From Macrostomum lignano (taxonomy: Eukaryota): a stretch of DNA of 64,000 nucleotides. Below the pieces are notes generated by a model that saw nothing but the letters and a program-made list of their open reading frames with translations, was not told where the DNA came from and searched no databases. How positions within the stretch are numbered: position 1 is the first letter of the stretch; each line of letters begins with the position of its first letter. Location of the stretch: positions 1 to 64,000 of the forward strand of contig NIVC01000974.1 of the NCBI GenBank assembly GCA_002269645.1. Reading direction: 5' to 3'. The translations under genes were made by a program, and so were the position numbers. Positions 39,459 to 40,332 of this stretch are shown here, one piece after another.

Positions 39459-39630
39459 TAAGAAAAATACACAAGGCAGAAAAAAAAGTAGAAATTTTTT
39501 TAAAGCCAACTGTGCATCACTTTTGCGAATGATTGTGCCGCTCAATGCTAATCAGTTTTTTGCATCGGTTTATTGTTTTTGTTGCCAGGAATATTTGCTT
39601 GGTCAAGGGTTCGGCCGCTGCGAGAGAGGT

Positions 39631-39758
39631 AGAGAGAGAGAGAGAGAGAGAGAGAGAGAGAGAGAGAGAGAGAGAGAGAGAGAGAGAGAGAGAGAGAGAG
39701 AGAGAGAGAGAGAGAGAGAGAGAGAGAGAGAGAGAGAGAGAGAGAGAGAGAGAGAGAG
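39631..39758. repeat. (AG)n microsatellite in the predicted 3' UTR of the prohormone gene
   Basis: Direct reading. Confidence 0.98.
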
Positions 39759-39811
39759 GGCAGGTCGTTAGTCAGCAAAGTCCGTCAGTCGCGAGCCGGG
39801 ACTCAAGCAGC

Positions 39812-40126
39812 CTATCCGTATCGCATCTGGCTGCCCGAGGCGAAGCCGCCCTTGGCCCGCTCCTGGCTGTGGTATCCGGGATGCTGGAAGGACAGCGACG
39901 AGGCCAGCAGGAAGCCGCGGTAGGGCCGCTCGAAGCGGCGCTGGCGCATCAGGCGGGAGCAGAGGGCGGCCAGCCGGGGGCTCGCTGGCCGGCGGCCGCC
40001 TGGCTGCACTGGCAGGCACATGGCCGCAGCGGCGTTATCGCCAGACGGCGTCGACTCGACAACGGCGGCAGCGGCAGCGGCGGCGGCGGCGCACAGCAAC
40101 AGCATAGCAACTAGCAGAGACTGCAT
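39812..40126 (-). CDS. Candidate neuropeptide precursor (104 aa) ending KGGFASGSQMRYG-stop (RYamide-type)
   Basis: ATG in aaaatATG context, hydrophobic and poly-Ala signal-like N-terminus, two RR dibasic sites, and a terminal Gly directly before TAG. Third codon positions are GC-rich as in the genuine exons. AATAAA lies at 39574-39569 on the minus strand. Confidence 0.65.
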   Translation of the reverse strand: MQSLLVAMLLLCAAAAAAAAAVVESTPSGDNAAAAMCLPVQPGGRRPASPRLAALCSRLMRQRRFERPYRGFLLASSLSFQHPGYHSQERAKGGFASGSQMRYG

Positions 40127-40240
40127 ATTTTGTCAGCTTCTCAATGCAACAGGTAAAGGCGCTGTAGAGTTTGGAGTCAGTCAGAGAAGCCGCTGGTCAA
40201 CCTTGGCGTGCCTCCTCCCAGCGGTCCGCTGCGGCTCCGG

Positions 40241-40332
40241 TTTATGTACCGCTGGCCGGTGACTATAGATGGCGCCGGCGCGGGGGCAATCAGGCTACGG
40301 GGGGCGCTGCGAACTCCTCGATCGCTGATTGG
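40241..40332 (-). promoter_or_regulatory. Putative core promoter of the prohormone ORF (TATA-like TACATAAA and a CCAAT box)
   Basis: Minus-strand TACATAAA at 40248-40241 and GGGCCAATCAG around 40332-40328, at plausible spacing. Confidence 0.4.

Follow-up and report, generated by a model that had tools for sequence, protein, structure and literature searches.

Does a short, GC-rich open reading frame (ORF) in the genome of the flatworm Macrostomum lignano encode the precursor of an amidated neuropeptide? The ORF lies on the minus strand of contig NIVC01000974.1 (assembly GCA_002269645.1), within a stretch of 64,000 nucleotides that was analysed as a whole and is referred to here as the window. 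A first-pass annotation had proposed a compact, single-exon neuropeptide gene at this locus. Our analysis indicates that the 104-codon ORF is quite probably a real protein-coding gene. With modest confidence, we favour the view that it is an orphan, intron-less prepropeptide gene giving one long peptide that ends in ...GSQMRY-amide and acts on a G protein-coupled receptor (GPCR) of the RF/RYamide type. The anatomy of the gene and its coding statistics, which we describe first, are direct observations on the DNA.

The ORF listing of the window places the 104 codons at 39812-40126 on the minus strand, from an ATG whose A lies at 40126 to a TAG stop, in a single uninterrupted frame without an intron. 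The translated product, MQSLLVAMLLLCAAAAAAAAAVVESTPSGDNAAAAMCLPVQPGGRRPASPRLAALCSRLMRQRRFERPYRGFLLASSLSFQHPGYHSQERAKGGFASGSQMRYG, ends in ...KGGFASGSQMRYG directly before the stop. Residues of note are Cys12, which sits within the hydrophobic N-terminus, Cys37 and Cys56, the Arg-Arg pairs at 45-46 and 63-64, and Lys92, the sole lysine of the protein. An in-frame TGA 9 nt 5′ of the ATG blocks any 5′ extension, and no upstream ATG occurs in the putative leader, both of which uphold the start codon originally proposed. Thus, the ORF is self-contained, unless a splice acceptor lies inside it. The features of the locus are as follows:

40328-40332, minus strand: CCAAT pentamer, a possible promoter element; present, but of no evidential weight
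40241-40248, minus strand: TACATAAA, TATA-like, 115 nt upstream of the ATG; present, with a putative function
40127-40240, minus strand: putative 5′ leader of 114 nt, 58% GC, with a possible acceptor-like ...ctctacag ~35 nt before the ATG
40064-40126, minus strand: start codon (40126-40124, A at -3) and signal-peptide-like residues 1-21, MQSLLVAMLLLCAAAAAAAAA, as judged by Kyte-Doolittle hydropathy
39935-40063, minus strand: spacer or pro-region, residues 22-64, with Cys37/Cys56, GGRR46 and RQRR64
39818-39934, minus strand: predicted mature peptide F65-Y103, 39 aa, FERPYRGFLLASSLSFQHPGYHSQERAKGGFASGSQMRY, from the translation
39815-39817, minus strand: Gly104, putative amide donor directly before the stop, from the sequence and from the precedents of NPP-4 and NKY precursors (see below)
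39812-39814, minus strand: TAG stop codon, from the sequence
39622-39758, minus strand: (CT)68 microsatellite in the putative 3′ untranslated region (Tandem Repeats Finder: period 2, 68.5 copies, 97% matches)
39569-39574, minus strand: AATAAA, tentatively a poly(A) signal, the first on the minus strand past the stop and 238 nt downstream of it

Every element that the first-pass annotation had listed (CCAAT, TACATAAA, aaaatATG, the ORF, (CT)n and AATAAA) is present on the minus strand at the position given for it. The flanking motifs are common, however. In the window, each strand has on average a CCAAT every 533 nt and an AATAAA every ~1.5 kb; for TATAAA and for CATAAA (40 copies in all) the spacing is ~2.5-3.2 kb, and the TACATAAA octamer is found three times. 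The CCAAT, TATA-like and AATAAA motifs are therefore at chance density, which makes them compatible with a gene but gives them little weight.

The case for a coding sequence rests on the ORF itself. GC content at codon positions 1, 2 and 3 is 0.71, 0.59 and 0.84, and the third-position value (GC3) is 0.86 when the (GCN)n run encoding alanines is left out. GC3 reaches 0.92 over the last 48 codons (residues 57-104), the strongest part of the ORF. The three-base periodicity has a permutation p of <=3e-4, with or without the Ala run, and of ~1.5e-4 in the C-terminal 48 codons. Five other genes of the window have the same order of GC3>GC1>GC2, with GC3 values of 0.69-0.80, and were used to train a codon log-odds model. 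Among the six frames, the proposed frame alone has a positive score (+0.19 bit/codon), and the remaining five score as they do in the five reference genes, including the typical antisense pattern. Periodicity, GC3 and codon log-odds thus agree that the ORF is coding in the frame first proposed. Its end is also distinctive: among the 135 ATG-initiated ORFs of at least 50 aa in the window, the candidate is the only one to end in R[FYW]G-stop, while 11 of the 135 end in Gly and 20 of the 135 have a strongly hydrophobic N-terminus. The GC-rich island in which the ORF lies, at 64-71% GC between flanks of 39-42%, is unique in the window and also speaks for a gene.

The translated protein has the layout of a secreted peptide precursor. 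A hydrophobic core spans residues 3-23, with a maximum nine-residue Kyte-Doolittle mean of 3.27; hydropathy is below zero from residue 22, where a polar stretch follows, so that on hydropathy the N-terminus is signal-like, as had been claimed. An Ala-x-Ala is available to signal peptidase, the likely predicted cut being before VVESTPSG. The preferences of the convertases for particular cleavage sites are well established. RQRR64, immediately before F65, is a strong R-x-R-R site of the furin/prohormone convertase type. GGRR46 is a possible site, albeit one disfavoured by the Pro at P1′, and RPYR70 before G71 is a possible RxxR site. Lys92 stands alone, with Arg90 at P3 and nothing basic at P4, P6 or P8. 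The translation also contains the spacer with two cysteines (Cys37 and Cys56, 18 residues apart) and the two RR sites (45-46 and 63-64) described earlier, and the peptide lengths given then are correct, namely 39 residues for F65-Y103 and 11 for G93-Y103. The earlier proposal left the mature product as either the 39-mer or the 11-mer. Because RQRR64 is strong and the Lys92 site lacks a basic residue at P4, P6 and P8, the sequence favours F65-Y103, the 39-mer, or else a 33-mer that begins past RPYR70, and the 11-mer, which depends on the lone Lys92, becomes the less likely of the two products. The predicted monoisotopic masses of the amidated peptides are 4448.18 Da (39-mer), 3599.75 Da (33-mer) and 1158.52 Da (11-mer).

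The assignment of the terminal Gly as amide donor has a direct precedent. The candidate ends in RY followed by Gly and the stop, and the same end is found in planarian NPP-4, where it is amidated in vivo: NPP-4 ends in ...KRQSVFRYG-stop, and QSVFRYamide from this extreme C-terminus was seen by mass spectrometry (Collins et al. 2010, PMC2953531, Tables S3/S5). Planarian NPP-3 similarly ends in ...AIVLTRFG-stop (Collins et al. 2010, PMC2953531).

From these features we infer secretion, cleavage and amidation, together with neuronal expression and a receptor class. Residues ~1-21 would route the protein into the secretory pathway and then be removed, and a PC2-type prohormone convertase would cleave after RQRR64, freeing the C-terminal 40 residues. 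Since Gly104 is already the final residue, a carboxypeptidase step would be unnecessary, and peptidylglycine alpha-amidating monooxygenase would use Gly104 to amidate Tyr103. The product would be one 39-residue peptide ending in -GSQMRY-NH2; the 33-mer could arise if RPYR70 were also cut, and the 11-mer after Lys92 would be less likely. The analogy of other R[FY]amide peptides suggests a receptor among the rhodopsin-beta GPCRs of the RFamide/RYamide group (sNPF/NKY/NPY-type clade).

A number of results weigh against this interpretation. A word-indexed search of 5.8 billion clusters gave no homologue at E<=10, a metagenome scan gave none either, and tblastn within the window gave no paralogue. 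Neither 15 billion proteins nor 153 billion gene calls contain the exact sequence, and an exhaustive phmmer search of 1.84 billion representatives returned a sole match (P0074, E=2e-4) that is a translated tandem repeat. Six amino acids (A, L, S, R, G and P) make up 67% of the protein, as any GC-rich ORF yields, and most of the signal-like region is a (GCN)9 repeat, with a long core and no basic n-region. The assembly has at least one 1-nt frameshift, in the essential gene SF3B1 elsewhere in the window, and indel errors could in principle alter the ends of the ORF. Finally, a hydrophobic start combined with an R[FY]G-stop end would arise by chance at ~0.01 per 64-kb window, as estimated from the ORF frequencies of the window, and so would not be rare over a whole-genome scan. 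The 104-aa protein has no Pfam match. The collections searched are without this species and its congeners, save some M. lignano UniRef entries, and the N-terminal 520 residues of SF3B1, used as a positive control, had a best match there of 79% identity. We therefore down-weight the silence of the homology searches and do not read it as evidence that the gene is lineage-specific.

Two alternatives deny that the locus makes a neuropeptide at all. The ORF could be spurious, a stretch of non-coding GC-rich island (promoter or CpG-like sequence, a decayed repeat or an untranslated RNA) whose peptide features are coincidental to an Ala/Arg/Gly-rich composition. The CpG observed/expected ratio of the island is 0.95, and four other ORFs of 53-193 aa overlap it on both strands, so ORF length by itself means little. 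With a hydrophobic run that is partly (GCN)9, promoter and poly(A) motifs at chance frequency and no homologue or called gene in the collections searched, this explanation retains a small but appreciable probability. It does not account well for a frame-specific periodicity that persists without the Ala run and peaks in the C-terminal 48 codons, for log-odds that are positive in the proposed frame alone, or for an R[FYW]G end found in a single ORF of 135. Alternatively, the gene could be real but encode a small, lineage-specific secreted or membrane-anchored protein that is not processed, with the hydrophobic 20-residue stretch as a signal anchor and the terminal Gly incidental. The long core and the missing basic n-region are in keeping with an anchor, 8% of the ORFs (11/135) end in Gly by chance, and other GC3-rich, Pfam-less ORFs of the window (12430-13071 and 16245-16823) resemble lineage-specific secreted proteins. 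We regard this as unlikely, given that the chance of a terminal R-[FY]-G is on the order of 1e-3 at most (none of the other 134 ORFs has an R[FYW]G end), that RQRR stands 40 residues before the end and would release a peptide in the 35-45 aa size class of NKY and NPF, and that the sequence past residue 64 is Gly/Ser/Pro-rich and Cys-free, which is more like a peptide than a folded domain.

If the locus encodes a prepropeptide, the next question is to which family it belongs. The first-pass annotation had pointed to arthropod RYamides, QRFP and FMRFamide; these likenesses are loose, the RYamide and QRFP comparisons fail on defining features, and the two closest families, NKY and the sNPF-type peptides, had been overlooked. 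NKY-1 and NKY-2 precursors are known from molluscs, annelids, nemerteans, brachiopods and phoronids (Thiel et al. 2021; Stewart et al. 2014). Some 50 of them share a layout of signal peptide, spacer, dibasic site, one peptide of 35-45 aa and the end [LMFIV]RYG(K/R)0-3-stop; recorded ends include LMRYG, IMRYG, AMRYG, PMRYG, VFRYG and LLRYG, and some precursors stop directly after ...MRYG or ...FRYG, as in Nipponemertes with ...KLMRYG-stop (Thiel et al. 2021 supplement). Pdum NKY-1, ending in ...IKAMRYamide, activates an sNPF/NKY receptor. In flatworms, an NKY1 transcript has been reported from a polyclad larva, and NKY is listed with several other families of lophotrochozoans that platyhelminths sometimes have as well (Conzelmann 2013). 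Our search of the literature on 'MRYamide' returned NKY/sNPF and arthropod work only, and none on flatworms.

The candidate resembles NKY precursors in having a signal-like N-terminus, a spacer, a di-/tetrabasic site and a single long C-terminal peptide (39 versus 35-45 aa). Its ...Q-M-R-Y-G-stop fits the [LMFIV]-R-Y-amide end, and ..MRYamide is the terminal tetrapeptide of Pdum NKY-1, Pdum NKY-2 and nemertean NKY-2. GY.S is shared with NKY-2 (PGYHS in the candidate, QGYVS in NKY-2), both have a Gly/Ser-rich centre (GGFASGS in the candidate), and the FWQPLGY start of mollusc NKY-1 can be set beside SFQHPGY. In contrast, the candidate has no Trp anywhere, whereas nearly all NKYs have the W-x-P-x-G core, and it lacks both FW[RQ]P[LM]G(G/Y)LP (NKY-1) and W[IL]W[MV]P.[QH]GY (NKY-2). 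Its GY motif is set 16-21 residues inside the peptide rather than at the peptide N-terminus (PGYHS occupies peptide residues 19-23), its precursor is shorter (104 versus 110-170 aa), and Gln occupies position -4, where NKY has an aliphatic residue.

We weighed these likenesses with a profile hidden Markov model (HMM) built from 50 NKY peptides and with decoys that keep the composition, the RQRR and the MRYG of the candidate. The candidate scored 8.1 bits against 4.1 +/- 2.8 for the decoys (p=0.09), and HMMs of the subfamilies gave p=0.08 (NKY-1 only) and p=0.21 (NKY-2 only). Ten held-out NKYs, including the aberrant 'NKY-like' peptide of Dinophilus, scored 15-51 bits, above all 3000 decoys (p<3e-4). 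Recognisable membership of NKY, promising by eye from the GY.S, the G/S-rich centre and the MRYG, was therefore rejected on the decoy-controlled HMM and the missing Trp. Thus, the candidate shares with NKY no more than its architecture and terminal tetrapeptide, and membership is not supported.

The sNPF-type peptides come closest over the last residues. GSQMRYamide is identical at five of six positions to Platynereis GSLMRYamide and at four of six to Schmidtea GSVFRYamide, although six residues give no statistical power. The precursor encoded by Schmidtea npp-4 likewise ends in ...FRYG-stop, and that last peptide is amidated. Peptides of this type end in x-[LVM]-[FLM]-R-[FYW]-amide and are cut out at mono- or dibasic sites as 5-10-mers, in 1-7 copies. 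The differences lie in position -4, which is Gln in the candidate and Leu, Val or Phe in the family, and in the precursor: spiralian sNPF precursors hold 3-7 short peptides separated by KR sites, whereas the candidate has a single copy and no dibasic site shortly before it. The nearest basic residues upstream are Lys92, which stands alone, and Arg90, and the nearest strong site is 39 residues upstream. An intron after the signal-peptide exon(s), a consistent feature of sNPF genes (10.1101/712687), is also absent. This last criterion is weak because the genome looks intron-poor, with 520 SF3B1 codons in one exon. Precursors with a single sNPF peptide do occur (T. castaneum, C. elegans FLP-21, echinoderms), and flatworms possess sNPF-type receptors: Smed-NPYR7-10 are the four of this type among the 16 NPYR-like receptors of Schmidtea. 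The flatworm RYamides known so far share precursors with RFamides, and a dedicated single-RYamide precursor would depart slightly from that pattern.

More distant families fit less well. The description 'NPF-like' holds for length and for none of the other features specific to NPF. At 39 aa the peptide is within the NPF range (36-43 aa) and equal to Moniezia NPF, and it is predicted to share an amidated aromatic residue after Arg. However, it ends in S-Q-M-R-Y, with Gln at -4, rather than in R-x-R-[FY]-amide (RPRFamide in flatworms), and it has no helix-favouring sequence. In NPY/NPF genes the peptide lies next to the signal peptide and an intron falls between nucleotides 2 and 3 of an Arg codon (10.1101/712687). 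In the candidate the peptide comes after a spacer of 43 residues, and nothing interrupts the CGA codon of Arg102, unlike the Arg codon of the NPF RF/RY end with its phase-2 intron.

Spiralian and flatworm luqins keep WRP[QH]xRFamide and a C-terminal Cys pair with 10-residue spacing, a pair lost in cestode luqins (PMC7041311). The candidate has neither WRP nor the FF of arthropod FFxxxRYamide, and its Cys37 and Cys56 are 18 residues apart and N-terminal to the peptide. The cestode luqins (Echinococcus, Taenia, Mesocestoides) are similar in layout, with ~90 aa, a signal peptide (signal-like in the candidate), a spacer, RR and a single C-terminal R[FY]-Gly peptide, but their WRPHSRFamide is absent from the candidate, and they end in RFamide and GR-stop. 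FASGSQMRY is loosely like the F[YW]xSG(S)RY of arthropod RYamides, but needs an insertion of 2-3 residues. The KGGF of the candidate and its upstream GY recall QRFP; human 26RFa ends in ...NGYSRKKGGFSFRFamide. The Lys, however, is at -12 rather than -8, and the end is SQMRY, not FxFRF. QRFP/26RFa peptides are defined by ~25 residues ending in GGFxFRFamide, with Lys18, Gly20, Leu4 and Ala8, and lophotrochozoans have QRFP-type receptors without a known ligand (PMC4062910). Nor can Leu4 and Ala8, both conserved in the 25-mer, be placed in the candidate. The NPF, luqin/RYamide and QRFP identities each fail defining features and were rejected.

Taken on its sequence, the predicted precursor resembles NKY in architecture and the sNPF-type peptides in its last six residues, and is a demonstrable member of neither family; any affiliation with the two is a sub-hypothesis of the orphan prepropeptide reading, under which a distant ancestry shared with either is conceivable. 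A more specific form of that reading, which we entertain only tentatively, is a new, fast-evolving flatworm RYamide, either a macrostomid-specific family or the long-sought, strongly derived counterpart of NKY in flatworms, which would supply a missing ligand to some member of their expanded set of orphan NPY/sNPF-like receptors. It is improbable that the gene is a single-copy sNPF-type (LFRFamide/'RYa') precursor whose short product, for example GGFASGSQMRYamide, acts on flatworm sNPF-type receptors. The hexapeptide likeness, the single-peptide precursors elsewhere and the flatworm receptors argue for it; six residues are insufficient for homology, the Gln at -4 is polar, the product needs a cut at the lone Lys92, and Schmidtea npp-4 is multi-copy with KR sites and the signal-exon intron is absent in the candidate. 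A highly divergent flatworm NKY orthologue, closest to the NKY-2 type (...W.W.P.QGYVSVP...G/S-rich...KLMRYG), would explain the architecture, length class, MRYG end and GY.S, and the reports of NKY in flatworms speak for it, but a p of 0.09 against <3e-4 for held-out members, the absence of Trp and the displaced GY make it quite improbable. Membership of NPF/NPY, of luqin or arthropod-type RYamide, or of QRFP is very doubtful indeed: the 39-aa length, the match of FASGSQMRY to F[YW]xSG(S)RYamide, the KGGF and GY of 26RFa and the ligandless lophotrochozoan QRFP-type receptors speak for one or another of them, and all three fail on their defining features.

If the orphan prepropeptide gene is real, it adds an unannotated peptide-hormone gene to Macrostomum, a model clade for regeneration and sexual selection, and a candidate ligand for the RF/RYamide-type GPCRs of flatworms, most of which are orphans. 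Neuropeptide GPCRs are discussed as anthelmintic targets, for which free-living flatworms are tractable proxies of the parasites. Short, intron-less, GC3-rich prepropeptide genes elude both gene finders and homology searches, but can be recovered by looking for a signal peptide, a dibasic site and an R[FY]G-stop end together and by testing codon periodicity. The view of neuropeptide evolution is unchanged unless a link to NKY/sNPF or a receptor pairing is shown.

The window as a whole is unusually dense in mini- and microsatellites. A ~5.7 kb satellite of the (CTGT)n type at ~33000-38700 translates as SVCLSVCL..., is extremely asymmetric between the strands, with an AT skew of ~-0.9, and ends ~0.9 kb past the candidate's putative poly(A) signal. 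SF3B1 lies at 71-1918 on the minus strand, with 520 codons in one exon. Its frame slips by one base at ~345-360 (minus strand), with no room for an intron and with the conserved continuation in frame 2. A 1-nt indel in the assembly would account for the slip, as would a pseudogene copy of this essential gene, and the case calls for caution on indel accuracy across the window.

Small ORFs without recognisable domains occur elsewhere in the window. Those at 12430-13071 and 16245-16823, both on the minus strand, are GC3-rich and have no Pfam match; in the latter, an internal Met gives a signal-like stretch followed by a Cys-rich region. Both may be lineage-specific secreted proteins and, if this is true of both, small, unannotatable genes for secreted proteins would be common in this genome. 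Another small ORF (43517-43726, minus strand) has a hydrophobic start and a terminal Gly, and was dismissed because neither a signal peptide nor processing sites could be made out convincingly.

On the plus strand, a DEG/ENaC channel gene (amiloride-sensitive sodium channel, PF00858) has its first exon at 25157-25705 and its last at 30921-31715, with several different minisatellites in the ~5 kb between them; DEG/ENaC channels of other spiralians include FMRFamide-gated ones, and we found no link to the candidate peptide. An exon of an aminergic-type rhodopsin GPCR at 48315-49028, on the same strand, runs on into 48892-49803 (7tm_1, E=5e-40). Its best matches are two Macrostomum lignano proteins (P0001 and P0002) at 72% identity, the next being at 48%; by themselves these figures point to a macrostomid flatworm, with the exon from a relative of M. 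lignano or a paralogous copy. The ORF enters a Pro/Ser-rich minisatellite, whose repeats read on the opposite strand, about where intracellular loop 3 would be.

Also on the plus strand, a reverse-transcriptase fragment at 55747-56136 (PF00078, E=9e-9, reading ...FADDLALL...) is probably what remains of a non-LTR retrotransposon. On the same strand, a two-pore-domain (K2P-like) potassium channel has probable exons at 19726-20400 and 22091-22510, with a weak Ion_trans_2 match (E=0.0016) and the reading ...TIGEW...; the acidic, Ser/Gly-rich tail of this channel runs into a repeat of the (GTTCGT)n type.

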